From the NCBI GenBank assembly GCA_965240325.2, contig OZ251224.1, positions 3,782,001-3,846,000 on the forward strand: a DNA stretch of 64,000 nt, given 5' to 3'. How positions within the stretch are numbered: position 1 is the first letter of the stretch; each line of letters opens with the position of its first letter. Below the pieces are notes generated by a model. It did not search any database. It was not told the DNA's origin and saw only the letters and a list, made by a program, of their open reading frames with translations. The position numbers and the translations under genes are program-made. Origin of the DNA: Rebecca billardiae RCC1528. Taxonomy: Eukaryota; Protista; Haptophyta. Shown here in pieces: positions 11,224 to 48,600 of the stretch.

Positions 11224-11428
<205 letters not shown>

Positions 11429-18900: not shown

Positions 18901-21900
18901 CGCCCATGCCTCCACCCTCCCCGCCCCCGTCGCCACCGCCGTCATCACCACCGAGCCCGCCGCCGTCGCCACCGCCGGCACCACCGCCACCGAGCCCGCC
19001 GCCAAGCCCGCCGCCATCACCACCGCCGCTGCCGCCGCCACCGAGCCCGCCGCCCAGCCCGCCGCCGTCGCCACCGCCGGCGCCGCCGCCACCGAGTCCG
19101 CCGCCAAGCCCGCCGCCATCGCCACCGCCGCTGCCGCCGCCACCGATCCCGCCGCCGAGCCCGCCGCCATCGCCACCGCCCGCGCCGCCGCCACCGAGCC
19201 TGCCGCCCATCCCGCCACCATCACCACCGCCGACTCCACCGCCACCGCGCCCGCCGCCGAGCCCGCCGCCATCGCCACCGCCGCTGCCGCCGCCACCAAG
19301 CCCGCCGCCCAGCCCGCCGCCGTCGCCACCGCCGGCGCCGCCGCCACCGAGCCCGCCGCCAAGCCCGCCGCCATCGCCACCGCCGCTGCCGCCGCCACCG
19401 AGCCTGCCGCCCATCCCACCACCATCACCACCGCCGACTCCACCGCCACCGCGCCCGCCGCCGAGCCCGCCGCCATCGCCACCGCCGCTGCCGCCGCCAC
19501 CGATCCCGCCGCCGAGCCCGCCGCCATCGCCACCGCCCGCGCCGCCGCCACCGAGCCCGCCGCCAAGCCCGCCGCCATCGCCTCCGCCGCTGCAGCCGCC
19601 ACCGAGCCCGCCACCGAGCCCGCCGCCATCACCTCCGCCGGCGCCGCCGCCACCGCCGAGCCCACCGCCGAGCCCGCCGCCATCGCCTCCGCCGGCGCCG
19701 CCGCCACCGCCGAGCCCACCGCCGAGCCCGCCACTATCACCACCGCCGACTCCACCGCCACCGCGCCCGCCACCGAGCCCGCCGCCATCGCCACCGCCGC
19801 TGCCGCCGCCACCGAGCCCGCCGCCGAGCCCGCCGCCATCGCCACCGCCCGCGCCGCCGCCACCGAGCCCGCCGCCGAGCCCGCCGCCATCGCCTCCGCC
19901 GCTTCCGCCGCCACCGAGCCCGCCACCGAGCCCGCCGCCATCACCTCCGCCGGCGCCGCCGCCACCGCCGAGCCCACCGCCGAGCCCGCCGCCATCGCCT
20001 CCGCCGGCGCCGCCGCCACCGCCGAGCCCACCGCCGAGCCCGCCACTATCACCACCGCCGACTCCACCGCCACCGCGCCCGCCACCGAGCCCGCCGCCAT
20101 CGCCACCGCCGCTGCCGCCGCCACCGAGCCCGCCGCCGAGCCCGCCGTCATCGCCACCGCCGGCGCCGCCGCCACCGAGCCTGCCGCCGAGCCCGCCGCC
20201 ATCGCCTCCGCCGGCGCCGCCGCCACCGCCGAGCCCACCGCCGAGCCCGCCGCCATCGCCACCGCCCGCGCCGCCGCCACCGATCCCGCCGCCGAGCCCG
20301 CCGCCATTGCCACCGCCTGCGCCGCCGCCACCGAGCCTGCCGCCCAGCCCGCCACCATCACCACCGCCGACTTCACCGCCACCGCGCCCGCCACCGAGCC
20401 CGCCGCCATCGCCACCGCCGCTGCCGCCGCCACCGAGCCCGTCGCCGAGCCCGCCGCCATCGCCGCCGCCCGCGCCGCCGCCGCCGAGCCCGCCGCCCAG
20501 CCCGCCACCATCACCACCGCCGGCGTCACCGCCACCGCGCCCGCCACCGAGCCCGCCGCCATCGCCACCGCCCGCGCCGCCGCCACCGAGCCTGCCGCCG
20601 AGCCCTCCGCCATCGCCTCCGCCGCTGCCGCCGCCACCGAGCCCGCCGCCGAGCCCGCCGCCATCGCCACCGCCCGCGCCGCCGCCACCGATCCCGCCGC
20701 CGAGCCCGCCGCCATTGCCACCGCCTGCGCCGCCGCCACCGAGCCCGCCGCCGAGCCCGCCGCCATCGCCTCCGCCGCTGCCGCCGCCACCGAGCCCGCT
20801 GCCGAGCACGCCGCCATTGCCACCGCCCGCGCCGCCGCCGCCGAGCCCGCCGCCCATCTCGCCACCATCACCACCGCCGGCGTCACCGCCACCGCGCCCG
20901 CCACCGAGCCCGCCGCCATCGCCACCGCCCGCGCCGCCGCCACCGAGCCTGCCGCCGAGCCCTCCGCCATCGCCTCCGCCGCTGCCGCCGCCACCGAGCC
21001 CGCCGCCGAGCCCGCCGCCATCGCCACCGCCCGCGCCGCCGCCACCGAGCCTGCCGCCGAGCCCTCCGCCATCGCCTCCGCCGCTGCAGCCGCCACCGAG
21101 CCCGCCGCCGAGCCCGCCGCCATCGCCACCGCCCGCGCCGCCGCCACCGATCCCGCCGCCGAGCCCGCCGCCATTGCCACCGCCTGCGCCGCCGCCACCG
21201 AGCCTGCCGCCCAGCCCGCCACCATCACCACCGCCGACTCCACCGCCACCAAGCCCGCCACCGAGCCCGCCGCCATCGCCACCGCCGCTGCCGCCGCCAC
21301 CGAGCCCGCCGCCGAGCCCGCCGCCATCGCCACCGCCTGCGCCGCCGCCACCAAGCCCGCCGCCGAGCCCGCCTCCGTCGCCTCCGCCGCTGCAGCCGCC
21401 ACCGAGCCCGCCGCCCAGCCCGCCGCCATCGTCACCGCCCTCCCGGCCGCCATCGTCACCGCCCAGCCCGGCTCCAAGCCTTCCGCTTCTCACGCCACCG
21501 CCCGCACTGCCACCGTCGCCACCGCCGTCGCCACCGCCGCGCCCACCGCTGGGCCCCACGCCACCGGCACCACCGCCCTCTCCGCCGCCCTTGCCGCAGC
21601 CGCCGTCGACGTTGTCGCCGCCGCCGAGCGCGCCCCCGCCGCCCCCGCCGCCGCCCCGGCCACCGCCACGCCCGCCCCCCGCGCCGCCGCCCGCGCCGCC
21701 GCCGTCGCCGCCGCCACGCCGGCCGCCGAGCCCGCCACCCGCGCCGCCCTCGGCGCCGCCGCCCCCGCCGCCGCTCGCCGCGCCGGCCCTGCTCTCCGCC
21801 GCCTTCGACGCGGGCGCCACCAGCCTCGTGCTCCGCTTCGACGCGCCGACCGACCGCGGCGGGCTGAACGCCGGGCTGGCGCGGTGCGCGCCGCTGCTCG

Positions 21901-24900
21901 ACGACGAGACGCTCGGCCTCGTGGCCGGCGGCGCGGCGGAGGTCGAGGCGGCGGACGGCGGCGCCGACGAGCGCCAGTGCTACTGGCGCGATGACGCGTC
22001 CCTCGTGATCAACCTGCGCGCCTCTTCGCGCGTCCGGCCGGGCGACCGCGTGGGCGTGCGCGCGCGCGCGGTCGCACACACGGCGTGCGCGGCGCGCGCG
22101 GCCGGCGCGCCGTGCGCCGAGCCCGCGTTCGTCAGCGTGTCGAGCGTGGTGATCTCGGCAGACGCCCCGTGCGGCGTGGGCACGGCGTGCGCGGCGCCCA
22201 TCGCCACCGTCTCCGGCGCGCACGCCGTGCCGAGCTGCGCGCACGCAACCCTCCGCCTCGTCGGCGGCGCAGCGGGCGCGGGCTTCGTCCTTCCGAATGG
22301 ATTCTCGTGGCGGGTGTCGTCGCCCGAGCAGGCACCCGCGCCCGCGGAGACGGTGGCGGCGCTGTCGGCGGTGCTCGAGGCGCTGCCGCCGACGCAGCCC
22401 GTGCTCGAGCTCGACGCCTCCGCGCTCGGCGCCGAGGGCGGCTTCGTCTTCTCCCTCGTCCTCACCTCCGCGCTCGGCATCGCGTCCGCGCCCGCCGCGC
22501 ACGCCGTGGCGCGCGCGCCGCCGGACGGCCCGAGCGTCGAGCTGAGTGTGCCGTCGTCGGGCGCGGTGGTGCGCGCGGACGCGGCGGTGCGGCTTGGCGC
22601 GCGCGCGGACGTGTCGCCGTGCTGGCCGCCCGCGCTCTCCGCGCAGGTGCGCTTCGGCTGGGCGCTGCTCAACGTGACTCGCGACGGCGGCGGCGGCGGC
22701 GGCGGCAGCAGTGGCGGCGGCGCGGCGTTGCCTGCCGCAGCGGCGCCGCGCGTGCCCGACCTGGGCGACGCCGCGGGCTCGACGCTGCGGCTGCCGCCGT
22801 GGTCGCTGAGCGCGGGCCACGTGTACACGCTGCGCGTGCTCGCGACGATGGCCGCGGCGCCCGAGCTCAGCGCGAGCGCCGACGTCTCGCTGCGCGTGCC
22901 CTACCTGCCGCTGCGCGCCGCGCTCACGCCGAGCGCCGCGCGCGTGGGCGGCGCCGACGCGGTGCGGCTGGACGCCTCCGCCTCGGCCAACCCGAACGAG
23001 GCGGCGGGCGGCGGGCTCGCGTTTGCGTGGGCTGTGGCGCGCGCGTCCGACGGCGCGCCCGTCGAGCTCGACCTCGCCAACGCCACCTCGCCCACGCTGC
23101 TGCTGCCGCCGGGCGCGCTGCCGCACGGCGCGGCGTATCTCGTGCGCGTGCTCGTGTCCGCGCCCGGCGCGCCCGCGCTCGCGCCCGCGGCGGCGGAGGC
23201 GAGGGTGGAGGTGGCGGCGGCCCTGGCGCCGCTGCCGGCGCTGCGCCTCACGCCACTCGCCGCACGCAAGGCCGCGCCCACGTGGGAGCGCAGCAGCGGG
23301 CGCCTCGTCCTCCGCGCCACCGTCGACGCCGCCGCGGACGCCGAGCTCGCCGACGGCGCGGACGCGGAGGCGGCGCACGACTTTGCGTGGCGCGCGTGGC
23401 TCGTGGGCGCGGGCGGCGCGCGCGCGCCCGCGCCGCTCGAGCTTGCGGACGCGTCGGGCGTCACGACGACGGGCGCCGCGCAGCCCGCGCTCGCCTTCCG
23501 CAGCGGCGCGCTCAGCGCGGGCGCGACCTACGCGTTCGAGGTGCGCGCGACGCGGCGCGCGGCCGGCGGCGCGGCCGGCGGCGCGGCCGGCGGCGCGGCG
23601 GTCGCGGAGCTGGTCGTGGTGGTGAACCGGCCGCCGCACGGCGGCGGGCTGGCGGTCTCGCCGGAGCGCGGGGTCGCGGCGCTCACCGCGTTCGCGCTGC
23701 ACGCGCCCAGCTGGACGGACGACGACGCGGACGACCTGCCGCTCTCCTACGCGTTTGGGCACTCGCCGGAGCGCGGCGGCGGCGCGGCTGCGGACGAGGG
23801 CGCGGGCGCGGCGCTCGGCGCGGCGCAGCGCTCGGCGCACGCGCTCGCGCTGCTGCCCGTGGGGAACCGCACGCTGCACGTGCGCGTGGCCGACGTGCTC
23901 GGCGCGAGCGCGCACGCCACGAGCCGCGTGCGCGTGAACTCGCTCCGCGCCCACGCCGCCGCGGCCGCCGCGGCCGGCTCGGCCGATGCCGACGCAGACG
24001 ACGCGATGCGAATGGCCGTCGGCCGCGCGGGCCTGGCGCTCGAGACGGGCGACGGGACGCGCTCTCTGCAGCTGGCGAGCGCGATCGCCGCCGAGCTGGG
24101 CGGGCCCGCCGCCAACGCGAGCGCCGCCCTCGACTCCGAGGCCGCCGTCGCAATCTCGCTCCTCGAGATCAGCGCGGCCGCGGCGCGCGCGGGCGCGCTG
24201 CAGGAGGCGGCGTCGCGCGCGCACGCCGCGTTCACCTTGTCGGCGGTGGTGAGCGCCGCGCCGGCGGCGGCGCTCGCGGGTGGCGGGGTGCAGCTGAGCG
24301 CGCTGGCGCAGGCCGCGGCGATCGGCGCCGCCGCGGCACAGGGCGGCCTCGGCGCCGCCGAGGCCGCCGCCATCGTGCGCACACTGGACTCTGCTCTCCT
24401 CGCGCCGACCGACTCCCACGAGCGCGCGGAGACGGCCGCGCTCGGCGCGGCCGCGGCGTCCGCCGCGCACAACCTGGCGCGCGCGCTGCTCGCGGGCGCG
24501 GTGCCGGGCGAGCCCGCCGTGACGGCGGTCGGCGCCGCCCTCAACATCTCCGCCGTGCGCCGCGCCCCCGCCGCGCTCCTCAACGGCAGCTTTGGCGGCG
24601 CGGGCGGCGCGGGCGCACTCCGAGTGCCGCCGAGCGCGCTCGCCGCCGTCGGCACGGACGAGCTTGGCGGCGCGGGCGTGGACGTGGTGCTGTGGAGCGT
24701 GGGCCGCGCGGCGCTGCGCGCGGCGCCGGCGCACGCCAACGCCACCGCGCCGCCGCCGGCGCACGGCGCGGCGCGCACGTCCACCAGCGTCTTCTCGGTC
24801 ACGCTCGCGTCAGCGGCGAGCGGCGCCGCGCTGCGCGTCTCGGGCCTGGCTGAGCCGCTGCTGCTCGGACTGCCGCCGCTGCCGGCGGGCGCGGCGGCGC

Positions 24901-27900
24901 AGCCGGGCGCGCCGAACGCGACGGGCGCGGGCGCGGAGGGCGGGGCGCACGCCGCGCCGCCGCCCACCGAGTGCCGCTGGTGGGACGAGGCGCGCGGCGC
25001 GTGGGTGGCTGACGGCTGCGCCACGCTCGCCAACGCGCCCGGCGGCGGCGGTGACGGCGGCGGCGGCGGCGGTGACGGCGGCGGCGGCGGCGGTGACGGC
25101 GGCGGCGGCGGCGGTGACGGCGGCGGCGGCGGCGGTGACGGCCTACTGTGGTGCGCGTGCGACCACCTCACCGAGTTCGCGGGCGTGGCGCTCGACGTGC
25201 CCGAGTCGGGCGCGGACGCGCTCGACGACGTGCGCTCGTTCACCCTCAACCCGCTCTCGACGAGCGACGTGGCGGGCGCGCTCAGCGCACCCGCCGCAGA
25301 GCGCGACCCGACCCTGCACTCGTTGGTCGCTGCGCTCGCGGCCGCGTGCGCCGTCTCGGTGGTGGCGCTGGCGTGCTTCGAGCGGCAGAGGGCGCGGCGG
25401 CTCGCGGCGCAGGTGGGCGGGGACGACGACAAGCCGGGCGCGGAGCCGACGGCGCGCCCCTTCCGCCGCGCGCTCAGCATGCACGCCGCGCGCGCGCGCG
25501 CCTCTGACCCGGCGGCCGCCGCCTCGCGCGCCGCCGCGCCGGGCGCTGGGCTCGTCAGCGCCGAGATTGCGATCTCGGCACAGTCCGGCGCCGAGATCGA
25601 GATCTCGGCGGCGCTGCGCGCGGCGCTGACCGAGCTGCACGCCGCGTGCGAGATCCAGCGGTACGTGCGCGGGCTGCTCGCGCGCCGCGCCGCGCTCGAC
25701 GACGCCGAGTCGAACGCGCCGAGCACGCCGCCGGCGGGCGCCAAGCGCGAGCGGCTCGCGCGCTGGCGCGCGGCCACGCGCCGCGCGAGCTCGAGCGGAG
25801 GCGAGGAGGCGCTGGGGCTGGCGCGGGCCCTCGCCGTGCGCGCGGGCTCGGAGCACACGCTGCTCGGCGCGCTGCTCGCACGGCGCGAGCCCGCCCTCCG
25901 CCCCTCCGAGCTCGCCATCCTCTTCTGGGCGGCGGCTGCGCTCGGCCTCGTGCTCTCGTGCGCGCAGTACGACAACGCCCAGCCCGAGCAGGGGGCGGCC
26001 ATTGTTCTGATACACGAGCTGCTCGCCGCGGCGACGACCGCGCTGCTCACCGCGCCGCTGCTCGGCGTGGTGAAGGCGCTCTTCTCGCGCCGCCGCCGGC
26101 CGAGCGTGCGCCGCATGCTCTCCCGCGCCGAGCGCGCCAAGCTCGTCTTTGCCGAGGCGGTGAGTGTGCGCGCCGCCGCGCTCGAGCCGCGATCGGCGGC
26201 AGAGGCGGCGGCGCCGCCGCCGCCGCCGCCGACGGCAGGGCCGGGCGCGGGCGCGGGCGCGGGCGCGGCGGGCGGTGGGCGCGGCGCGCGCGCGAGGGCG
26301 TGGGCGGCGCGCGTGCTCGGCGGCGCCTCGCGCGCGCGCGGCGCGGGCCGCACGGCGCTGCCCGACGGTCGCGTGCTCCCCACGCGCCAGCCGCGCCGCT
26401 CGCCCGTCCAAGTGACGCTCAGCGCAGCCAGCGATACGCCGCCGGGCGCGGCGCCGCGCGGCGCGGGCTCGGCAGGGCTGGCCGCCGCGCCCGCTCGGTG
26501 CGCCGACGAGGGCGCAGGCAGCGGCTCGAGCGGCTCCGACTCGGGCGGGCGCGACAGCTCGCTTGGCGCCCGCGCCCGCGCGCTGCAGCACACGCAAGGC
26601 GTGCGCTCGCGCGTCGCCGCAGCGGAGGGTGGGCTGGGCGCGGGCGGCGCGCTGGGCGGGGGCGGCGCGCCCGGCGCGGACGGCGGCGCCGCCGAGGCCG
26701 AGGAGCGGGCGCGGGCGCCGCAGTCGGGCGCGGCGCCGCCTTCTTCGGCGCAGCCCCCGAGCCTGCTCACTGAGTGCGCGCTGCGCGAACACACGGCGCG
26801 GACCTCCTCCACGACGCGACGGCGCAGCAGCGCACGCGCCGCCCTGGGCGGGCCGGCCACCTCGGCCGCGGCCGAGCGGAGTCCTGTCGGCGCGCGCGCT
26901 GAGCCCGCCTCCCTGCGCCAGCCCGCGTCACTCGAGCTCGCGGATGGCGCGCCGCCCACGCCGCCATCGCGGCTGCCGAGGCTCCGGGGCGGCGCCGACG
27001 GGCCCTCCCTCGGCGGCCGACCGACCCGGCTGCCGCTCCGCTCCTCAGGCTCCTCGCCGCCCCCGCGCTCCTCGCCGCCCCCGCGCTCGCCTCCGGGCTC
27101 GCCGTCGCGCGACGCGCGCGCGCCGCGCGCCGAGGCGGCGCGGGAGTACGCGGAGGCGGCGGCGGCGGCGGCGGCCAACACGGCCAGCAGCAGGACCACG
27201 GCACCGCGCTTCTCGAGTCGCTCGGGATCGACCGTGACCCTCGCGTGGGCCTCGCCCCAGCGCTCGACCTCCTGTGGACGCGTCTCGCCAGCGAGCGCGT
27301 TGGCGGCGGCGGCGGCGGCGGCGGAGGCGGCGGCGGGTGGCTCGAGCTCGCGAGACGGCCGTGCGTCGGGCGCGGCGCCCGGCAACGGCGGCGCCGCCGG
27401 CTCCGCCCCGTGTTCAGGCGCCTCGCCGCGCTCGCCGCCCTACTCGCCGCCCGGGCCCGCGCCTCCGCCATCGGCGGCGGCCGCCGACTCCGTCGTACCG
27501 ATGCGCCGAGCGCCGCCGCGCGAGCGGCCGGCGTCAGCGGCCGGCCGCGTGCAGCTGCCGCCGATGCCGCGGCCGGCGGCAGTGGCGCACGGCGGCGGCA
27601 GCGGCGAGTGGCACCGCGCCCGGCCGAGCGAGCGGCTGCAGCTGCAGCTCAGCTCGCCGCCGCTCCGCACGCGCGTGGGCGAGCTCCAGGCGCGCCTCGC
27701 CACTTTCTCCAACCCCTCCGCGCCGGACTCGCCCGCGCCGCGCCGGGAGCCGGCGCGCCGCACGTTCTCCGCAGAGCTCGCGCAGCAGTACATGCCGTCC
27801 GCGGCGTCGCGCTTCGAGGCTCCGACCGAGGCCGAGCGGCTGCGCGCTTCAGGTAGGTGGTCTGCCGCGCCCTCGCCGCAGCTGCCGCCCCGCCTCGGCG

Positions 27901-28778
27901 GCGTGCTGGAGCGCCAGTCGTCTGCAGCGCTCGCGACCGACGACGGCGCGCGCGCCACCGACCTCTCGGGCGTCTCCGTGGCGGAGGCGTCCGAGCTGAC
28001 CAGCGCGTCCCTCGCATCGCTGTCGGCGCTCTCCGCTCCGCACGCGAGCGGGCTCGACTCCGCCTCCGCCTCGCTGCTGCGCTACCGCTTCGTGCTCGCC
28101 GACCCGACGCTCTCGGGCGCGGTGCACCCGCCCGCCGCGCGCCGCTTCCTCGAGGAGCTCGGCTTTGGGCGCGCTCGCGCGGCGCGCGCGGTTGCGCAGC
28201 TCGAGGCGGCCGCCGCCGCGTCGGACGAGGCCGCGGGCGGAGGCGGCGGGCGCGCGGGCGGAGGCGGCGGGCGCGCGGGCGGAGGCGGCGGGCGCGAGCG
28301 CGCAAACGGTGACGGCGTCATCACCTTCCGCGCGCTGTGCAGCTGGTACGCGGTGCGAGTCGAGGACGAGGCGCGCGCGCGCGTGCGCCGCGCGGCGCGC
28401 GCGCGCGCGCTCGCGCCGCTGTGCTGCGCCGCGCGCGGCGCGTGCTCGGCGGCGTGCGGCCGGCGCGTGCGCACGACCCTCGGCTGGCTCATCTCGGTGG
28501 CGACGGTGTGCGCGTGCTGCCTCTCCGCGCTCGCGTACGGCTACCGCTTCGGCCGCGCCAAGACGCGGCGCATGCTGCTCAGCTGGGGGCTCGCCGAGGC
28601 GCAGCGGCTCGCGCTCGTCGAGCCGCTGCTCACGCTCGTGCGCGTCGGCGCGGCGCAGGCGGTGCGGCGCACGGCGCACTTTGGCGCGACAGTGGGCGAC
28701 TCGATCAACCACACGCTCGCGTCACTCGCCGGCCGCTGCCTGCAGTGGGCGCTGGGCGGCGCCGGGCTGGCCGGCTGA
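12978..28778 (+). CDS. Giant (~4965 aa) polycystin-1/adhesion-receptor-like protein: signal peptide, RCC1 repeats, (SPPP)n stalk, REJ, GAIN/GPS, multiple TM
   Basis: Exons 12978-13129, 13243-13422, 13563-13916, 14066-14404, 14641-14820, 15086-28778 (14898 nt, open after splicing). RCC1-type repeats G..HTC.....KCWG.N..GQLG. Pro-rich region ~15190-21775. REJ-like VNRPPHGG...SWTDDDADDLPLSYAFG. GPS CRWWDE...W...GC...CACDHLTEFA. Hydrophobic segments follow. Confidence 0.85.
15190..21775 (+). repeat. Coding minisatellite encoding ~2200 aa of Ser-Pro3/4 (extensin-like) repeats
   Basis: A 39-bp unit (SPPPPSPPPAPPP) occurs five times from 15230. A ~51-bp unit (SPPPSPPPSPPPxPPPP) dominates ~17200-21400. 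Longer blocks are duplicated (e.g. the PRLPP block at ~15835 and ~17025). Confidence 0.95.
25041..25142 (+). repeat. 18-bp tandem repeat (GGGGGD)n inside the GPS motif
   Basis: ggcggcggcggcggtgac repeated about 5-6 times between the GC and CAC cysteines of the GPS. Confidence 0.9.
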
Positions 28779-33476: not shown

Positions 33477-33782
<306 letters not shown>

Positions 33783-35991: not shown

Positions 35992-37873
35992 TTACTTCGG
36001 CCCTTGTCCACTGCGTTGCGCGTGTTCAGTCTTCGGGTGATCCTGATGCCCATGGTGCTCACCGAAAAGGCTCAGCATCTCAACGACGCCATGCACCTTG
36101 ACCCATTCTGCATGCATCATCTCGTGCGGGACGTCGATGGCGACGCCCGGTTGGTTGAATGCGCGAGCGACCTTGGACACGCGGACCAAGTGCCTGAGAG
36201 CTTCCTCCCCTTGGGGGCTCGTGCCGGCGGCTGCGGCGGGCGGGATGAAGCCGAGCACGCGGCCCACAACCAAGAATGCCAGCGAGCCGAAATTGATCGC
36301 TGCATATCCGAGGCACAAGAGCCCCGCGCCAACCATGGCCCCAGAGAATCCGACAGAGCCGGCAGCTGCGCCGCCGATCACTGGACCGAGCATGGAGCCC
36401 CCCTGCCTCGCCATGTTGTCTGCGTCGCGTGGTAGAGGTGTGGGCGCGCAGGGGAGCGCAGTGAGCGGGCAGCTGTGTAGCAGGTTGCGCGGGCGGGCAG
36501 GCGGATGTATAACATGTTTTGCTCCCGCGCGCTGCCGCCGCAGCCGGCGCTCACAGAAGGTCACAATCGTCTGTGTGGCGGCGTGCTCGTCTCGGAGCTT
36601 TTGAGGCTTGCCAGCGCGCACTGCGGGCATGCCGGGCGTCATCGCGAGGCCCTGCGAGGCGCCAACCACGGCCAGGATACCGACGTGCATCGCCCACCAC
36701 TGGTCGAGGTTGCGCTCCTCCCCTTGACCTTCCTCTGCCACGCTGAAGCCACAGGCCGTGCAGCCCCCGGCAATCGCGAGAGTTAGGCAGGCGATGCCAG
36801 CGAAGAGCAGGCCCAGCGAGAGCACGTCCTGGGGTCGGCACGGATGGCACACGCGAGGCAACAGCCGCGGCGTGAGCTCAGGACGGCGCTGCGCGGGGCG
36901 CCGCGCGCGCGCTCAGCCAAGCCCGGACCTGGAAGGGAGTACCGGTCCAACGGCGCGTCGCCCAGCGGTCGGCCAGGGCGCCGGCGAGAGGGCATGCAGC
37001 AGAGTAGCCGAACGCATAGGCGGACTGCGCCGTCGCCGCGCGGATCGGCTCCACGCCGTTCTGGAGCAGGTGCAGGATCAGCGTGCCGTTCATCACGCCG
37101 AACAGGATCATCGTCAGCATCACGCCGGCGAGAGCGAACACGAGCTGCCGCGTCAGCACGCTCTCGGGGACGTGCTCCGACGGGGGGATCTTCCGTGCAT
37201 CGGCTTGAGCGAGCTGCTTCGAGGCTCTGCGCACCTTCTCCAGACCATTCGTCTTCTGCTTCACTAACCAGCGCGAGCGCGCCACGGAGTACAGCGCGCA
37301 CGGCATGACCAAGGACACAAAAACTGCACTCACGAGCAGCGCAGCCCACACGGTGGAGGCAGATAGAACGCTGGCGGCGATGATAGGGCCAAGCGAAGAG
37401 CCGAGGCCAGTTGAGAGCTCGAAGCAGGCCATGACCGCCGCGTGCCCTTTGGTGATCTCGTCGAGCATGATCGCCAGCGCAGCGTTGGTCGCGCACACGG
37501 TGCCGAGCCCAACGCAAAGGCGGCCCACGACCATCAGCGCAACCGTCGCCTGCGCGGGATCGGGACTGGCGAGGCCGATGACCGGACCGAGGGCGAGGAA
37601 CGTTGCACTCCCAAGCATGGCGATGAGGCCGACGCCGAGGAGGGCCTGGAGACCGAAACGAGACATGAACGCTCGCGCGGGTGGCCCGCCCACCAGCTGC
37701 CCGCAGTTGAATCCCGAGACGATCAGCCCGACGGCGATGCCCAGGTTGGGCACATCGAGTGGCGCAAGGGCGTGCGGGATGATGGCAATCGCGACGCCCG
37801 TGCTCCCCACAGCCGAGAAGCCAACGCCACACACCACCGCGACGATGTCGAGCCGCTCCTTCCAGTTGACCAT
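35992..37873 (-). CDS. Major facilitator superfamily transporter
   Basis: Exons 37873-36929, 36828-36555, 36419-35992 (introns 36829-36928 and 36420-36554, both GT-AG). About 12 hydrophobic segments; motif-A-like FMSRFG and GALADRW; GRLCVGLG; GSSLGPIIA / GSMLGPVIGG. Confidence 0.85.
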
Positions 37874-38766
37874 GGCGGCCAGCAATGAGAGGGGCCGGTG
37901 CGGGTTGCGGCCTGCTCAAGTTTCGGCGGTTTCCCCCACCATCCGGGTAACGAAGCCGGCGGAAACTGGCGGGTGAAGGCGGGAAGCTGGGACGCCGACC
38001 CGTCCGCGCTGCTCGCACCCGGCCGAGCCGCCCGAGCTCGCGCGAAGTCTTTTTTCGTCGCAAGGGGCCGCCGCTATAGCCCTCGTTCGCTCGCAGCACG
38101 CAGCACGCAGGTCTCATCAGGCCACCACCGGCGATGGCGCGGCAGCGACGGCGCGCCTGCGGCCCAGCCGGGCCTGGGGCGGCGCCAGCTGCGCGCGAGC
38201 CTGTGCATGGTGGTGGCGGCTGGGGACGAGGACGGGGACGGTTGGCGGGACGACTGCGAGGGACCTCGGGCAAGAATAGAGGACGCCCAACGCCCCAAGC
38301 CCCAAGGTCTGCTACCATTGACGTGAAGCAACACAGTGGGCTGTGGCCACCCGCAATCGACGCGGGCGGTCCTGAACGGTGCACGCCGGCGTGCGCGCCG
38401 TCAGGCGGGCGGCCAAAGATGACTACGGTGACAAGCATGCGTATCGTAAGTGGTCAGTACTGCTGCCAATTGATGCTGATCATCGATGCGCGCCGCAGCC
38501 GGCGCAGCCTTAGTGCCGCTACCGTCTCGCGGCCGGAGGCTCAGACGTAACTAGTAGTTACGGAGTAGCCTCTCCCTGCTGCCAGCAACTGCTGCAACTG
38601 GCTCCTCGAGTCAACACTGAATATGCGCGCGCAGTCGCGCACGCGCACGCTCTCTGACTCTGATTGATCGCACTACGTCTACGAGCTTGATGCGTGATTC
38701 TCAGTCGACGACCGGGCGTCGACTCTGATCGTCTACTAGTACGGCTAGTCGTAGTAACTAGTAGAC

Positions 38767-39432
38767 TGTCGAAGGAGTTCAAGAGCCCGAAACGACTGAG
38801 CTAAATCGGTTCGCGCGAACCGATTTAGCTCAGTCGTTTCGGGCTCTTGAACTCCTTCGACATAACCGTAAGTCCCCTGTTGGACACCACGCGAGGGGCT
38901 GTAGTCCTGTCCAGTGTTCTGACGGATTTGTTGTCGAGGTTTTTCTCTCCCCGCCTGGTCTTTTCCCAGGTGTCCCGCCCTGCGTGCTCGTCTGCTCTCT
39001 GGCTTCGTAGCCGACTCCGTCTTTTGTGGGCGGTGAGCCCTTCTTGCTGCTGTGGCTTTGTGACGAGGCTCTTTTTGTGTCTTTGTTGTTGACCCGGGCG
39101 ACTGTCCCGGAGGTTGCGCGTCGCGGACCGTGCTCGTTTTCTGTCGTCTTTCTTTGTCGTGGTCATCTCCTTTGTGCTCCCCTCTTTTTTTGTTCGTCTT
39201 TTTGCCGACTCCTCGCTTTTCATTCCCCCCCGGAGCCGCGAGGCTCTCGCGAGGTCGAAAGCGCTTCGCCTGAAAGGCCAAGAGTTCTTATGCCCGCGTG
39301 TCGGTCGCTGGATTCGAACAGGTGACTTTACGGTTATGTCGAAGGAGTTCAAGAGCCCGAAACGACTGAGCTAAATCGGTTCGCGCGAACCGATTTAGCT
39401 CAGTCGTTTCGGGCTCTTGAACTCCTTCGACA
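38767..39432. mobile_element. 666-bp non-autonomous TG...CA element with palindromic terminal repeats and 5-bp TSD (TRIM-like or Ginger-like)
   Basis: Identical 96-bp perfect palindromes at 38767-38862 and 39337-39432. Flanking direct repeat TAGAC at 38762-38766 and 39433-39437. Inverted similarity extends ~20 bp inward. Confidence 0.88.
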
Positions 39433-39575
39433 TAGACAGTTAGTACTTAGAATGAATATAATAGCAGAAATAACCGACGAGTGTCATGACGATATATATA
39501 TATATATATATATATTAACGACGTGGTATATGCAACGGGCAGGCGTCAGAGTCAGCAAGATGTAGCAGTCTCGGA

Positions 39576-40876
39576 TTATGGCCCGCGGTGCAGGGCGGAG
39601 CGCGCAGCGTGGAGCCCGCACCAGCGGGCCCGAACCACGTTTCAAAAAGATCTTTGATCAAGAAAAAAGGGACGGGGGGCGGCGGAAAAAAAGGGACGGG
39701 GGGCGATTTTTAGGGCTGGCGGAGACCGAGTTTCGAGTTTTTGAGTCTTTTGAGATCGCATAGAGAGGTCTATCAGTATCAGGCCAAAAAAAACCGCGCC
39801 CAGCTGATTCCCTTAAGTAAAGTGCGATCTGGACGTCAGCTGGACGTGACATTAGTGTAACGGTTCGTTACGAGCGAATCGTACTCGTCTTCCCGGATCG
39901 CGTGACGTCCGGACTGGGCCACGTCCGGATCGTCGGAGGTGACGTGCCCCGGCACGATGGGCGATGGCGGATATGCGGGACGGCGCCTGCACGTGCCTCC
40001 GGACCCGCCTCCCGCTTGCTGCTCACGCAGTCAGCTGCGACCGTGGCGCATGATCGCAGAAGCAGTGCCGGCAGTACGGCCTGCATCAGCTAGTGCCGCG
40101 CCGTCGTGGCGCGCGCGGTACGGTTGCGCGTTTGCAGCGCTCGCCGCTCGGCGACGGCACGCGCGTGCGGCTCAGGTGTGTCAAATGCGGTCTCGTCGGC
40201 GCGCTTTCGCCTGCCACCTCGTGCACCCGTGCCGCCAGTTTCATCGTCTTCATGAGGACTGCTGCTGCTGTCGCCATCCGCTCTCCATCACCCCGAGTCG
40301 CCGGTCGCGCGGCGCGCGCGGTAGGCACTAGGCAGGGCGTACGGTCACTCACCCGTGCAACGGGTCAAGTGGCCAGAGTACGTCTGGTCGTTGGCTGGCA
40401 CGGGCCGCAGCGCTAAAGCACCCTGCTGTCACACCCGACTCCTTCAGTACTCCGAGCTCCGCGGCACGACTCACTCGGCACGATCGCGGACGGGTCGGAT
40501 CCGAGCTGATCAGCCAGAGTTGGACACAGTTTGGCAGCTACTAGTAGTAATTCCGATGCCGATGGCACGATCGCGGACGGGTCGGATCCGAGCTGATCAG
40601 CCAGTTGGACATTTGGCAGCTAGTTGTCAGACGGACGTCCGATTTGACGACCGGTGCCGGGTGCGGTCTCAGGTCCGCTGCTGTGATTGTGTGAAGTGTG
40701 AATGAGTCTTGCGGTCGCGCAGGCAGGGCGACGGTCGGACTAATATAGCTTCAGTCATCTCAGAACCGACTTCAACTGGCGAACTGCCACTACGGCGGAG
40801 AGCCGCGATTGCACGGCCACCGCGGGCCCCCAACTGCGTTGATTCTATGCAGAAAAGGACCGCGGAACGCGGTCAT
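39576..40876 (+). mobile_element. Helentron/DINE-like element, copy 2
   Basis: Left subTIR 39580-39592 with a nearby inverted copy GCACCAGCGGGCC. Right subTIR CACCGCGGGCC 40818-40828. Hairpin 40858-40874 followed by (AT)n. Confidence 0.7.
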
Positions 40877-41191
40877 ATATATATATATATATATTTATTT
40901 AAGACAGGCTCATCATCGCGATGATGACTCCTCGGAAGGCACTTCCGGTCGGATTCAAAGTCCTAGACTAGAGAGCCAGAGGCCGGCCGACAGCACTGTG
41001 CAAGTCCGAGCCGACCCACGACGTGGCTGTGACGGCGCCGTCGGCCGTGACGCGCGCAATCAGTCATAACGTCAGCAATGGCCGATGATGCCAGGCTCCG
41101 GCCCAGATGGAGAGACCGCCTGGAGACGAGCAGGGGCGTTCTGCGTGCAGGCGAGCGACGGTCGAGCTGATGCGCTGCACGATCGGCATGC

Positions 41192-43901
41192 TCACGCGTA
41201 CAGCTTGTCCAGCTCCTCCTTGTGCCGCGCGACGATCTGCGTGGTGTTGGCCGCCAGGGCGCGCGCGAGAGCGCGTAAGCAGCAGCGCAGCCGCGCGCGC
41301 GCGCGGCGTCGGGGCGGCGGGCCGCGTGCGCACAGCGCTCGCTCGGTGCGCCCGGCCCGCGCCGAGCGACGCACCTGGTTGCGCTTGAGCTTCATCGCGG
41401 CCGTGAGCATGTCGTTCTCGGGCGTCCACGGATCGGCGACCAGCCCGAGCTTCTTGGGGATCTCGAAGCCGACCAGCTTGGCGGCCTTGCACGCCTCGAG
41501 CGCACTCTTGCTCACCTCCTTCACCACGTCTGCGTGCGCGCACAGCTCGTCGAAGCTGCCCGAGATGCCCTTGGACTGCGCGTACGCGCTCACGGCCGGC
41601 TCGTTGGGGCAGGCGAGCGCGATGCAGTAGCTGTGCGTCGACTTGGCGTAGCACATCGGCAGGTCGATGTAGGGCGAGTTCTTGAGCGCGTTCTCCACCT
41701 GCGGCGAACGGGCCGAGGTGGGCGGAGGGAGGGAGGTGGCAGGTGGGCGTGTGCGGCGGGGCGCGCGCGCGCGCGTGGCGGCGTGAGTGAGCGAGCGGGG
41801 GCAGACGGGCGCGCCCGTGCGGGGGAGGCGGGTCGAGGCTGTGCCGCGCGAGGCCCGCGCCACCCACGGCCCAGCCCGGCTCTCGACCCCTGCCGCCCGC
41901 GGCCCAGCCCGGCTCGGCCCGCATCCGCGCGCGCGTCCGTGCGTGCGCGGCCGCACCTTTGAGAGCGCCACGTACTCACCCTGCTGCAGCTTGACGAGGT
42001 CCTTCTTGCGGTCGATGATCATCAGCTGGCCGTCGGGCAGGATCTGGCCGATGTCGCCGGAGCAGAAGTAGCGCACGCCGTCGATCGTCGTGTACTCCGT
42101 CTCGTTCTTCTTCGCCACCTCCGGGTCGGGCTTCTCGGCATCGACCAGGTACCCCTGCGTCACCATTGGCCCGCCGATCAGGATCTCTCCGCGCGGCATC
42201 ATCACGCCCGGCTTCTCCTTGTCCGCGAAGAGGTAGCCGCCCTCGGTGTAGTCGCGCAGCCGGATGCACGCCGCGGCGGTGGGCGGGCCGACGCACGAGG
42301 TGGTGTTGTCCGCGAGGTTGGCGATCACCGTGCCCGCGCACGTCTCGGTCAGCCCGTAGCCCTGCCGCACGGGCGCGTCAAAGACCGTCTGCACGAACTT
42401 TTGCACGTCGGGCGAGAGCGGCGCCGAGCCGGTGAGCATCACGCGCACCTTGCCGCCGAGCAGCGCCTGGATCTTCTTGAAGACGAGCGCGTTGTACAGG
42501 AACCCCGCGCCGATCCCGCCGCGCTCGTAGTTCGCCACGCCGGCGCGCATCGCCGCGTTGAAGAGCGCCTTCACCAGCGGCGAGCCCTTGCTCACCTTGG
42601 CCGTGATCGCCGAGTACACCTTGTCGAGCACCGCGGGGGCGAAGACCATGATCGTGGGGTGGAGCATCGGCGCGTCGCCCACCTGCCCCTTGGCCAGCTT
42701 GACGCCCGTCGACGTGAGCGTGTGCGGCGAGCCGTACCCGATCGCGATCCCGAAGAACATCTGGCACACCTCCGCCGCCATCTCCATGATGTGCGCGAGC
42801 GGGAGGTACGCGAGGTACACGTCCTCGGGGCGGACGTACCCGCCGAGCGCGTGCTTCATGCCCGCCACCGCCGCCATGAAGTTGCCGTGGCTGATCAGCA
42901 CGCCCTTCGGCAGGCCGGTCGTGCCCGACGTGTACATGATCACCGCGATGTCCTCAGCCGTCACCTGCGCCGGCTCGACGGGCGCCGCCGCGCCGTCGAG
43001 CAAGCACTCGTCGAGCGGCTTGACGGACACGCCGCACTTGGAGAGCTTCTCGAGGTCGGACGGCTGCATGTCCGAGCTGATCGTCACGACGTACTTGAGC
43101 TGCGGGCACTGCGACGCGGCGGCCGCGAGCACCGGCAGCAGCTTCGCGTCCGCGACGACGGCGGTGGCCTTGGTCTGGTTGATGCCGTGCACCACACCCT
43201 GAGGCGGGCGGCGGCCGGCCGCGGGGCGATGGGGCGGCGCGATCGGGTTGGGCGGGCGGGCGGGCGGGCCGCGCGCGCACGGGACGGGCGGCGCACCCGC
43301 CTGCACGCGCGCGCGCGCGCGAGCGGCACGCGAGCGGCGCGCGCACCTCCTCGCCGAGCGTCGCATAGATGGTCACCACCGTCACGTCCTGCCGGAACGC
43401 GGCGAGCGCGGCGACCATCCAGTCGCGCTGCGTCTCGGCGTAGATGACGAGGCGGTCCTTGGGCTTGAGCTTCGCGAAGGACACGAGCCCCGCCGCCAGC
43501 TCGCACGCCCGCGCGTGGTACTGCGCGTACGTGAGCCACTCGTACTCGCCAAACGACAGCTTCTCAAACGAGCGCTTCGGGTTGTCCGGGTCGGGCTCGA
43601 ACTCGCGCTTGAGCAGCGGGCGGGCGCCCACGGCGAGCTTGGACGGGTATCGCTTCGCGGTGCGCTCCACCACCGCCCACACGTGCGCCAGCCCCTCGCC
43701 GGGCACGCTGACAAACTTGCCGACCGACGTGGCGCGCCAGAGCACGTTCTTCGAGTCGAGCACGCCGTACGGCTTGGACTCGGGCGGCACCTTGGGCGGG
43801 GAGAGGGCCCAGGTGACCATCATCACGACCACTGCCGTGCATGCGTACACCACGGGCGCCGCCTCAGGCGGCACGCCCAGCGCCGAGGCAACAGTGTTCA
43901 T
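41192..43901 (-). CDS. LACS: Long-chain acyl-CoA synthetase (LACS/ACSL3-4-like), ~721 aa
   Basis: Exons 43901-43347, 43198-41957, 41698-41375, 41236-41192. Motifs IMYTSGTTGLPKGV, YLPLAHI, GYGLTET, GDIG..., IIDRKKDLVKLQQGEYVALSKVE, LTAAMKLKR; N-terminal TM. Confidence 0.95.
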
Positions 43902-44234
43902 GGCGCAGCGGGGGTACTGGAGGCCGCGGCGGCAGCGGCGGCGATCGGTAAGCGCTCTCGGCCGCTCTCGCGTGGCGCTCACGCCCAGCAGGCAGCAGCC
44001 CATTGTTTTTGCTAAATTGCGCAATGGATAATATGGCCACTCGCCGCTGCGCGGCGGCGCGATGCGTGCGCGTGCGAGGTTCCGCGTCATCATTCATCAA
44101 GCTGGGGCCGCGGCGCGGCGCCGCGCCCGCCGTGGAACGGGATCGCTGGAAGTGACCGCGGAAGTTTCGAGAATCGAGGCCGATCGATTCATGGCGGCGG
44201 CCGACCACGGGGTCGCACTAGTCTACGCCGCTCA

Positions 44235-45224
44235 ATGGCGCGCCGACTCGTGAGCGCGGTGACGGGTGGCTTCTCGTACACCGGGCGGTACCTCACGCGG
44301 CGGCTTCTCGACGAAGGGCAGTCAGTTGTCAACCTCACCAGCCACCCGGCGCGGCTCACCGACTTCTCAGACGCCGAGCTGAAGCGCGTGAGCGTCCACC
44401 CGCTGGCCTTTGACGCCCCAGACCGCCTCGAGCGCGCCCTCGCGGGCGTCGACGTCCTGTACTGCACATACTTCATCCGCTTCGCGGTGGGCGACATGAC
44501 CCACGCACGCGCGGTGGACAACCTCGCCACGCTCTTCGACGCCGCGAAGCGGGCGGGCGTGCGCAAGGTCGTGCTGTCTTCGCACACGCACGCCTCCGAG
44601 GACAGCCCGTACCCGTACATCGCGAACAAGGCGCGCGGTGTGGCGGCGCTGCGCTCGTCGGGGCTCGACTACGCGGTCGTGCGCCCGTGCGGCATCTTCG
44701 GCGACAGCCCCACCGAGTCGATCCTGATCAACAACGCGGCGTGGGTGCTGCGCCGCTCGCCGCTGTTCCTGCTCGCGGGCGATGGCAACGACCGATTCCA
44801 GCCGATCCACGTGCGCGACATGGCCGCGCTGATGCACGAGCTCGGCGCGTCCCACTCCACCGGCGAGGAGCGCGACGCGTGCGGACCGGAGGCGCCCACC
44901 GCGCTCGAGTTGTTCCGCGCAATCGCGCGAGCGTGCGGCTCGCCCGCCCTCGTGGCCGCGCCGGGCCTGTCGACGCGGGTGGTCACCGCGCTCACACAGC
45001 CGCTCAACTGGTACACGGGGGACATCCTGCTCGACACGGACGACCTCGAGTTCCTGTGCGGCGGGCTGACAGTCGCGGACGACCCGCACGACCCAGCCAT
45101 CGCGAGCCGGCGCAGCCTCTTCGCTTGGCTGGAGGAGAGCGGGCCGCGGCTGGGCGAGCGCTACGTCTCCTCCTTCTCCACCTACTACGACACGACGCCC
45201 GCGCCGGCAGCGCGCGCCAAATGA
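44235..45224 (+). CDS. NAD(P)-binding atypical SDR / NDUFA9-like epimerase-dehydratase
   Basis: Intronless 329 aa. Rossmann VTGGFSYTGRYL, PYIANK (YxxxK), VVRPCGIFG, FQPIHVRDMA. Confidence 0.88.
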   Translation: MARRLVSAVTGGFSYTGRYLTRRLLDEGQSVVNLTSHPARLTDFSDAELKRVSVHPLAFDAPDRLERALAGVDVLYCTYFIRFAVGDMTHARAVDNLATLFDAAKRAGVRKVVLSSHTHASEDSPYPYIANKARGVAALRSSGLDYAVVRPCGIFGDSPTESILINNAAWVLRRSPLFLLAGDGNDRFQPIHVRDMAALMHELGASHSTGEERDACGPEAPTALELFRAIARACGSPALVAAPGLSTRVVTALTQPLNWYTGDILLDTDDLEFLCGGLTVADDPHDPAIASRRSLFAWLEESGPRLGERYVSSFSTYYDTTPAPAARAK

Positions 45225-45683
45225 TGACGACGGCAGACGCGCGCTAGGCAGCCGAGCGCAAGGTCATGCGACCGTGGACGTGTGCCCAGCGTACCTCAAA
45301 ACAGCTCGATTCTGGCGCCCGCTCGACCTGCACGCGAGACGACCGCGCGCAAAAATATGCGCTGGCGCGGCTGGTGGCGCTGTCAATCAATACTATGTCA
45401 TCAATAAGACTGCGCGTCTGCGAGTGCGCTGTGCGCGTCGTTCACGCTTCCGGGGATGATGATCGATCGGCTCTCGCACGCGTGCTGCTACCCGCCGTGG
45501 ACGCGCTGAGCGTGTAGTACGTACGTATAGTCTCAGTGATAACTATACGACGACTACTATAATAACGGCGCGCTGACGTAATAACGACGACTGCGTCTGC
45601 TTATCATGCTAACGACGGCGCCACTTAATCGGACTTATTCGCGCAGCAGCATATGACGAGCAGTCTGAGTCGCGAATCGGCGA

Positions 45684-48600
45684 TCATTGATGTGGGGCAT
45701 CATCAGGTGGTGCTGCCAGTGCCCGCCGACTGAAGCGCGAGTGCTGAGTAGTCGTGCGGCGGTGGCGAGCCGACTGAAGCAGCGCGTCGAGAAGCGCGCG
45801 CCCGACCCGCGGCGCCGGTGGTGCGGCGAGGCACTCCGGCTCGACGCCGGCCACGCACTGCCGCGCGGCAATCAGCCCGGCAATGCCCGCCCCGCGGGCC
45901 CCGCCGCCAGCCCGCGAGTCCTCGCTCGCCCCGCCCTCACTGGAGTCCGGGCCAGAGTCCGGGTCGAAGACGTCAAGGTTGCGCCGCGCGAGCTCGTAGA
46001 CTGCCGGGAGTCGGGACGAGAGCTGCGCGCGCATGGCGGGCAGAGCGCGGACGAAGCGGACGAGCGCGGCGCGCAGCGCGCCCGGCGTGGTGAAGTTGCG
46101 GATCAAGTGCTCCTCCGCGCGCCCCGCCCCGTACAGGTCCGCCGCGAGCTCGACGAACTTGGCCTGGCTCGCCAGCGCCAGCCCCGGCGTGCCGCGCGCC
46201 GCGCACAGCACGAGCAGGTGCATGAACCCGGACAGCACGCCGTCGAGGTGGCCGAGGAGCGCCGAGCTCTGGATCGGCTCGTAGTGCGCTCCTCTGCAGA
46301 AGAGGCGCACGCGCACGCGCGGGCACCGCCTCGCCAGGTGTGCGCGCACATCCGCCAGGTAGTGCGACTCGCTCGCGTACCCACGGCCGCCGCGGGTGCG
46401 CGGCGCCGGCATGCGGAAGGGCCGCTGGTCGTGCGCGAGCAGTAGGTAGCTGACGCCCTCGCCGTCGGGCCGGGCGCTCAGCGTACTCGCGGCGGCGCAG
46501 AGCTCGGATGCGAAGAGCGCCGCGAGGGCAGGGAGCTCCGCCGCCGCCGCCGCCGCGTCGTACAGGTACAAGTTGACGCCGAGCACCGCGCCGCGCCCTG
46601 CACCCCGCGCGCTCGCGGCGGCACGCGCATCCGCGAGCCACGCCGCGTCCGCGGGCGGCGGTCCGCGCGGGTCTGGGCGGATGAGGAAGGCCATGTCAAA
46701 GACATGCCGCACGCGCGCGCGCGCCGAGGCGCGCGGCGCGACGAGCGCGCGCGCCGCTGCGGCCGCCGGCGCGGCCGGGCTCGCGCTGTCGCACGCGCCG
46801 CACTCCGCCCGCGCCGCGCGGCGGGTGAGGTCCGCCACCACGGCGCACGAGGAGATGGCGCGCGGCCGCAGGCACGCGCTCGACGGGTAGTGGCCGATGA
46901 GCTGCGCTCGGCCGGGCACGGGCGTGTAGGAGAAGGCCACGACGGTGAAGGGGACGCCGTGCGTGGCGGCCTCGCGCGCCCAGGCCCGCCAGCGCGGCTC
47001 TCGCGCCGAGTCATAACGGCCGTCGATCACGTCGGTCGCCAGGATGAAGAGGGCGCCGATCGTGCGCCACTGCGCGGCGGGCACCGCGCGGGACGAGCTG
47101 GCCGGCGGGCCCACGGTGCGCAGGCCGAGGGGCAGCGGCGGAGTGAGGCTGCCTCTCTTGATGTCGCACCGCCAGCAGAGCAGCTCAGCACGCGGGCAGC
47201 GCGCACGCAGCTCTTGCGCCAGCGCCCACACGACCGCGTGGTCGCCCACGGAGAACCACGGGCCGTCCCAAACGGTCGGCAGCCCGATGCCAAGCGCGCC
47301 CCGCGCGCAGAGCGCGCCGCCGGGCGGCGGGTCGGGCGGCATTGGCACCGGCGGCAGTCCTGCCGCGGACGACGCTCGCGCCAGCGCCCGCGTGCCCGCC
47401 GACGCCGAGCTGTTGGCCGCCGGTGGCGGCGCAGCGCACATTCCGCCGATGTTGTCGCCGGGCGCGGAGCCAGCCGCTCTCGGCGCCGCCAACGCCGCTC
47501 TCGCCGCCGCCGGCGCTTCCGCCACCGCCGCCTCCACCAGTGTCGGCGAGGCCTCTGCGCTGCCGCCCGCTGTCGGTGCCGGCTGCACGACCGGCCAGAC
47601 AGCCGCCTCCGGGAAGAGCACCTCGCGAAGCGGCTTGCGCGGCGAGGTGGCGACGTCGAGCTCGGCGGGGAGATGCCCGACCGCGACGAGCATCGTGATC
47701 AGGTCGCCCTCCGGGATGCCCACCTCGCGGCGGAGATCGCGATCTCGCTGCGGCGGCACGTCCCAGTTGAGCGGACACGCGCCCAGCCCGACCGAGTGCA
47801 GCGCGAGCAGCACAGACTGCGCGAACATGCCGCCGTCGATCCAGCCCTGGTACCGCTCCGTGGGCATCAGCATGTAGTGCTCGACCGACGCGGCCAGGAC
47901 CAGCACCACCGGCGCCGTGTGCCCGAACCCGCGGTTCCCGCTCTGGTGCCGCAGCGCCGCCGCACGCGCCGCCGCGCTGCTCAGGTAGTACACACGCGCA
48001 CCCTGCCGGTTGCACACGGACGGCGACGCCTCGATTGCGCGGCGCACCGCCTCGACGATGAGGCCGGGCTCGACGGGGGCGTGCGCGTCGAACTGGCGGA
48101 TCGAGTGCCGCGATGCGAAGAAGGGCGCCAGGTCCACGCCGGCCGATGGAAGCGCCGACTCGCCGCCGCTGCCGTCACCGCTGCCGCCGCTCGCGCCCGC
48201 GCCGGCGTCTGCGTCCGGCGGGAGCGGCGGCAGCCGGCCGACGGCGCGGTGGACGTCCTCGCGGCGCACACGGCGCGCGCCGCCTGGTGGGAACGCCGAA
48301 GCAAACGCCTCCGACCCCCAGTCCTGCGCCCGCCTCTCCCACGACCGCAGCAGCTTCGCCGCCTTTGGCGGGACAGCCGCGCCCCGCGCCTTGTGCGCGT
48401 GCGCATATGAGGTCAGTGCGTCGCGGACGCTGAGCAGGACTGCGACGTCAGTCCGCCGGAGCTTTCCGGTGCTGCTGCCGGCGCGGGCGAGCAAGGCACC
48501 GGCGGCCGTTTGCATCTTGTCCAGCGCGCCCGAGCGCACGCCAAACCCGAGCTTCATGTCCGGCATGCTCAGCCCTTTCTCAATGTCGTGCTGCCAGCGG

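Follow-up and report, generated by a model that had tools for sequence, protein, structure and literature searches.

A 666-bp non-coding element with perfectly palindromic 96-bp ends in Rebecca billardiae that looks like a single insertion of a MITE-like DNA transposon

The window (by which we mean the whole stretch of DNA analysed, 64 kb in length) has a GC content of 59-84%, which is lowest in the 38-40 kb interval (58.6%), where the element described here sits. The open reading frames (ORFs) of the window are long and apparently intron-poor, and Pfam places cellular genes among them: a protein kinase, a START+EDR2_C protein, a long-chain acyl-CoA synthetase, an NAD-dependent epimerase-like protein, a glycosyltransferase and a TPR protein. 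The element is intergenic. It lies between a 551-aa ORF ending at 38438 and the 3' end of the acyl-CoA synthetase gene at 41192, roughly 1.75 kb past that 3' end. Among sequences from marine eukaryotes, the best match to the acyl-CoA synthetase reaches 72% identity, and the enzyme shares about 58% with the representative of a protein cluster that has a member from Ostreococcus lucimarinus. On the other side, the 551-aa ORF (36783-38438, minus strand, starting with ATG) has no Pfam domain and no match among 1.84 billion representative proteins; it may be an orphan gene, or a frame that the high GC content has left open by chance.

The window also contains a tandem array of about 6.5 kb (15201-21779) inside a plus-strand ORF of 4625 aa (14901-28778), with 82-84% GC and a strong negative GC skew. 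Its best period is 51 bp (17139-21452, 84 copies, 80% matches), and its translation in the reading frame of this ORF is (SPPP)n, so that the protein looks like a giant extensin-like or hydroxyproline-rich-glycoprotein-like cell-wall protein. Gene content and composition together suggest that the host is an alga with a gene-dense, GC-rich genome. The GC content and the palindromes described below had prompted the idea of a herpesvirus-like or giant-virus origin, which was dropped given the cellular genes for the START+EDR2_C protein, the acyl-CoA synthetase and the (SPPP)n protein. A scan for bacterial promoters and terminators was set aside as irrelevant, the host being a eukaryote. Microsatellites elsewhere in the window are (ATAT/CATA)n at 11295-11424 and (CT)n at 33477-33732.

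The element and the duplication that flanks it consist of the following parts, in which TSD stands for target-site duplication.

38762-38766, no strand: left copy of the TSD, TAGAC; the identical 5-mer lies directly outside both terminal repeats.
38767-38862, no strand: left perfect palindrome of 96 bp with the outer end TGTCG; 100% self-complementary and the same as the right copy.
38863-38894, no strand: left subterminal segment, partner of 39305-39336; the first 9 nt pair perfectly and 27/33 aligned positions match overall.
38895-39304, plus strand: unique non-coding interior, pyrimidine-rich and A-poor on this strand, as judged by composition, homology search and self-BLAST of the window.
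39305-39336, no strand: right subterminal segment, partner of 38863-38894 in the inverted-repeat alignment.
39337-39432, no strand: right perfect palindrome of 96 bp, identical to the left one, with the outer end CGACA (repeat finder).
39433-39437, no strand: right copy of the TSD, TAGAC; the identical 5-mer lies directly outside both terminal repeats.

Each terminal repeat is built of 48+48 nt with a spacer of 0 and 0 mismatches according to the repeat finder, the two copies are 100% identical to each other, and 474 nt lie between them. The 48-nt arm occurs four times, twice on each strand, and nowhere else in the 64-kb window even when 3 mismatches are allowed (0 matches expected from 100 shuffles). 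Apart from (TA)n and (CATA)n microsatellites, the 64 kb contain no long palindrome other than these two. The ends of the element are TGTCG...CGACA, its length between the TAGAC copies is 666 bp, and we estimate that a 5/5 match of flanks at boundaries already fixed by the repeats would arise by chance about 1/1000 times. The palindromes, their mutual identity, the TAGAC flanks and the 474-nt interior had all been claimed in a first-pass annotation of this DNA, and a reading of the window together with the repeat finder bears them out. That annotation also held that inverted similarity continues inward, which is likewise present. As a direct repeat the terminal sequence measures 98 nt, given that TA follows both palindrome copies, and as a perfect inverted repeat it measures 105 nt (38767-38871 and 39328-39432). 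BLAST and local alignment carry the inverted repeat to approximately 129 nt at 95%, with 27/33 positions of the inboard part matching. Among the four arms there are thus 0 differences in 192 nt, against 6 differences in the 33 positions of the adjoining inboard segment. Folded as single-stranded DNA, the whole element forms one long hairpin (-202.5 kcal/mol, z = -17 versus shuffles).

The 474-nt interior contains 46 A, 158 T, 139 C and 131 G on the plus strand. A frame of 175 aa on the minus strand (38825-39352) covers most of it, and a homology search found no protein homologue. The segment with a 31-residue frame open across a palindrome was likewise without a match in a homology search, and exact look-ups of two ORFs on the element returned no record. 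RNA-gene readings of the element were considered as well. Rfam at gathering thresholds gave 0 matches across the window. A tRNA gene was rejected, with 0 tRNA genes called in the window by ARAGORN and no Rfam tRNA match at E up to 10. On the minus strand, reading inward from the middle of the right palindrome, there are an A-box-like motif (39363-39373) and a B-box-like motif (39310-39320), 53 nt apart and with 1 mismatch each; the same motifs, counted with consensus patterns for the pol III A and B boxes, occur at chance frequency across the window (17 found versus 17.05 expected, and 24 versus 22.9). On this frequency, and with no match to a tRNA model, a tRNA-derived SINE was rejected. The only matches at relaxed E-values are to the mir-335 precursor (RF00766), which both strands of both palindromes hit at 43-46 bits, below the gathering score of 64; this is generic hairpin similarity.

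The evidence for the element rests on a single copy. Self-BLAST of the window at word size 7 found no second copy, and neither a solo unit nor a half-arm occurs elsewhere in the 64 kb. DNA-pattern scans of viral contigs and of prokaryote genome contigs gave 0 matches in both collections. In metagenomes, four JGI contigs (L003-L006) match the terminal 20-mer exactly, and the shared stretch is only 20-26 nt. All four matches fall inside one conserved bacterial coding sequence without wider similarity, and we therefore regard them as chance matches and not as copies. Two Logan contigs of the same species (L001/L002; ERR14847148 and ERR14847151), assembled from short reads, are 99.95-99.98% identical to the window over 41991-47706, and over that interval they hold no copy. 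A partner enzyme is equally absent from the neighbourhood: in the 20 window ORFs scanned, Pfam found no transposase or integrase domain and no RT or gag domain, with cellular domains only.

Taken together, the element is very probably a single mobile-element insertion. The terminal repeats and the 5-bp TSD exactly at their boundaries support the non-autonomous insertion that had been proposed, and the TG...CA ends (more exactly TGTNR-type) with a 5-bp TSD are, as had been argued, the signature of an integrase-type DDE enzyme. Our preferred reading, which we consider about an even call, takes the 666 bp as a MITE-like DNA transposon of the cut-and-paste kind, non-autonomous and inserted once. 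Its terminal inverted repeat (TIR) would have a self-palindromic outer 96 nt, and it would depend on a DDE enzyme of the retroviral-integrase type supplied in trans. The size (666 bp, against a usual limit of about 800 bp), the non-coding state (two translated frames without a homologue), the TIRs and the TSD are those by which MITEs are recognized. With its short length, non-coding interior, long TIRs and ability to fold into a long hairpin, the element also resembles hairpin-like MITEs and foldback elements. It differs in that neither TIR of an ordinary MITE is a palindrome by itself, and in that classical foldback TIRs have tandem subrepeats and longer TSDs.

The first-pass annotation had gone further and placed the element between two classes, LTR elements and TIR transposons. 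This is not supported, given that the inverted repeat (105-129 nt) exceeds the direct repeat (98 nt) in length and that no retroelement feature was found. The direct repeat is then fully accounted for by a TIR with a self-palindromic outer 96 nt and needs no explanation of its own. The argument that identical copies indicate a recent insertion is not supported either, as it is valid under an LTR model only; TIRs inherit their identity, and a new insertion does not restore it. The sharp contrast between the arms and the inboard segment is nevertheless not explained by inheritance of a TIR alone. This contrast could mark the edge of the inherited TIR, or it could reflect a process that regenerates the palindrome, for instance copying as in LTR elements or passage through a hairpin.

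For the TIR transposon, we infer the enzyme class, the mobility and the behaviour of four ends along the following lines. An integrase-type DDE transposase, presumably encoded elsewhere in the genome, would recognize the TGTCG ends, expose 3'-CA ends and insert these into the target at positions staggered by 5 bp; repair of the gaps would then give the TAGAC duplication. With the end sequence present in both orientations within each palindrome, there would be four potential transposase ends. The outer pair would move the 666-bp unit, and the two ends of one palindrome could in principle move a 96-bp solo unit as a minimal element.

Several groups of elements with related ends have been described. 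Ginger2/TDD elements have TIRs of about 50-180 bp, TGTNR termini, a TSD of 4 bp (5 bp in TDD-4 and TDD-5) and a preference for AT-rich RTATAY targets (Bao, Kapitonov & Jurka 2010, PMC2836005), and Ginger1 has 4-bp TSDs of CCGG/CCGT (PMC2836005). The TSD is 6 bp in GingerRoot/IS3EU and 5 bp in most LTR elements (PMC6839031), and IS481EU has TSDs of 4 or about 15 bp, TGT...ACA ends and TIRs mostly <50 bp (PMC10045372). Among these, the Ginger2/TDD signature appears to fit the element best: the TIRs (105 nt perfect, ~129 nt in all) fall inside the 50-180-bp range, both outer ends, TGTCG, fit TGTNR, and the TSD has 5 bp as in TDD-4 and TDD-5. Non-autonomous copies are also known for Ginger elements (PMC2836005). 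The differences are that no H2C2 plus DDE partner was found by Pfam among the 20 window ORFs scanned, that the TSD TAGAC, at the one site available, shows neither RTATAY nor CCGG, that a self-palindromic outer TIR has not been described for Ginger elements, and that the reported hosts of Ginger2/TDD are metazoa, Dictyostelium and one fungus, whereas the host here is an alga. The likeness would thus mean that the element works like Ginger2/TDD and not that it belongs to that group.

The main rival is a composite origin, which we consider unlikely. Here the basic mobile unit would be the 96-bp palindrome, a minimal MITE in which two 48-bp TIRs meet with nothing between them. Two such units would have come to lie on either side of some 474 bp of unrelated DNA, and a transposase acting on the outermost ends would have moved the whole segment as a unit and produced TAGAC, by analogy with KolobokP and with bacterial composite transposons. 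In the latter, which PMC9587614 also discusses, two IS copies flank a passenger, and of the four transposase ends the outer pair moves the whole. The units that flank the interior here are 96 bp and encode nothing, and the host is a eukaryote. That every palindrome holds a complete pair of identical ends speaks for a composite, and so does the combination of perfect palindromes with an imperfect inboard neighbour, as expected from separate histories. The reading is weakened by the symmetric inner flanks and by the lack of individual TSDs. The sequences directly inboard of the two palindromes are inverted copies of each other (9 nt perfect, 27/33 overall), which two independent insertions would not give, and neither palindrome has a 5-bp TSD of its own, the flanks being TAGAC/TAACC on the left and GGTTA/TAGAC on the right. 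Nor was a solo unit seen in the window or in the Logan, viral, metagenome and prokaryote collections searched, or in the search with the palindrome-covering frame.

Kolobok elements, to which the closest described architecture belongs, make TTAA TSDs, unlike the TAGAC seen here. KolobokP is a DNA transposon called 'composite-like', as its terminal direct repeats have TIRs of their own and solo repeats can be excised (Kojima & Bao 2022, PMC9587614). The same text states that solo repeats can serve as non-autonomous elements (PMC9587614), and it thereby documents for the composite reading both direct repeats with TIRs of their own and excisable solo units. The element is similar in that its 96-bp direct repeats each consist of two 48-nt inverted arms, so that the ends are LTR-like and TIR-like together. 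It differs from KolobokP in that the KolobokP repeats are ~450 or ~660 bp with TIRs of 11-18 bp, against 96 bp and wholly palindromic here; in that the KolobokP termini are RR...YY (PMC9587614), against TG...CA with a TAGAC duplication; and in that KolobokP belongs to an animal lineage and encodes a transposase and a His-Me nuclease, against an element that encodes nothing. The first-pass annotation had recognized no described family with this structure. This was right in that KolobokP is another superfamily with inner TIRs of only 11-18 bp, and too strong in that its direct repeats do carry their own TIRs (PMC9587614). An architecture that is LTR-like and TIR-like at once therefore has a precedent in KolobokP.

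A TRIM-like non-autonomous LTR retroelement, with the 96-98-bp repeats as LTRs made identical by reverse transcription, an LTR-element integrase as the enzyme of insertion and palindromy as a peculiarity, is quite unlikely. The direct repeats (98 nt, 100% identity), the TG...CA ends and a TSD within the 4-6-bp range (TAGAC) are those by which LTR elements and TRIMs are recognized, and the size, the roughly 100-bp identical repeats and the short non-coding interior agree with TRIM layout. LTR synthesis would account for the perfect left-right identity, and a 5-bp TSD is typical for LTR elements (PMC6839031). Against this, the element lacks a primer-binding site (PBS) and a polypurine tract (PPT), as the first reading of the sequence had already noted. 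No TGG-type PBS begins within 5 nt of a repeat in either orientation (the nearest TGG lies 18 nt inside, at one end only). On the plus strand, purine runs of 8 nt or longer are absent from the interior, and the nearest minus-strand purine tract is 77 nt from a repeat (38940), with none abutting in either orientation. Furthermore, the inverted similarity runs 9-33 nt past the repeats, which an LTR model does not predict, and the window ORFs scanned contain no domain of RT, gag or integrase. A self-complementary LTR would also be expected to place a perfect 48-bp hairpin in the R/U5 and U3/R parts of the RNA.

We regard a non-mobile origin as very unlikely, be it a local rearrangement in which template switching duplicated a palindrome around filler DNA or an artefact of assembly or polishing. 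It would fit a single copy without relatives in any collection searched, and no independent assembly of the exact stretch was retrieved, the same-species Logan contigs covering 41991-47706 only. However, it would have to account for an exact 5-bp duplication at the repeat boundaries, for TG...CA ends and for symmetric inboard extensions at both ends, and a fold-back read would be expected to yield one large palindrome and not two identical ones of 96 bp, 570 bp apart.

Two further readings involve hairpins. The first, a long shot in our view, combines a hairpin (fold-back) DNA intermediate, passed through in every round of copying and thereby keeping the ends identical and perfectly palindromic, with integrase-type insertion or, in a milder form, takes the 96-bp palindrome as a free-standing minimal transposon that builds composites around arbitrary host DNA in an alga; to our knowledge, the pairing of integrase-type insertion with regeneration of hairpin ends has not been described for eukaryotic transposons. 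The second, which we find the least probable, is the integrated form of a small element whose ends pass through covalently closed hairpins, in the manner of rolling-hairpin or hairpin-telomere copying, with the palindrome regenerated from one arm in each cycle. The four arms without a mismatch next to inboard sequence that has already diverged would suit it, as would the layout, in which a short inverted segment that is not palindromic comes after the terminal palindrome, as in hairpin-ended linear replicons. Against it, a clean 5-bp TSD and TG...CA ends are signs of DDE integration, the element encodes neither Rep nor a resolvase nor any other gene, the viral-contig scans gave no relative, and what speaks for it is purely structural and comes from one copy.

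The best reading remains a variation on known TIR transposons and no new class. If a family were confirmed genome-wide, the insertion would represent a very compact eukaryotic transposon, with ends valid in both orientations and four usable ends in 666 bp. Such a family would bear on the origin of composite and LTR-like architectures from TIR elements, on the spread of integrase-type DNA transposons in the host lineage, and on how long perfect palindromes, which are normally unstable, persist in a compact genome. The palindromes could also give hairpin RNA if they are transcribed. With one copy and no partner enzyme seen in the window, the element is a structural curiosity for now.

The DNA to the right of the element holds several smaller repeats. 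A perfect 19-bp direct repeat (A6GGGACG6CG) occurs at 39663-39681 and 39687-39705, 24 bp from start to start and about 230 bp from the element, and a perfect direct repeat of 41 bp lies in the same intergenic region (40477-40517 and 40564-40604, 87 bp from start to start). Two (TA)n microsatellites (39492-39516 and 40875-40896), each preceded by GTCAT, bracket approximately 1.36 kb to the right of the element.
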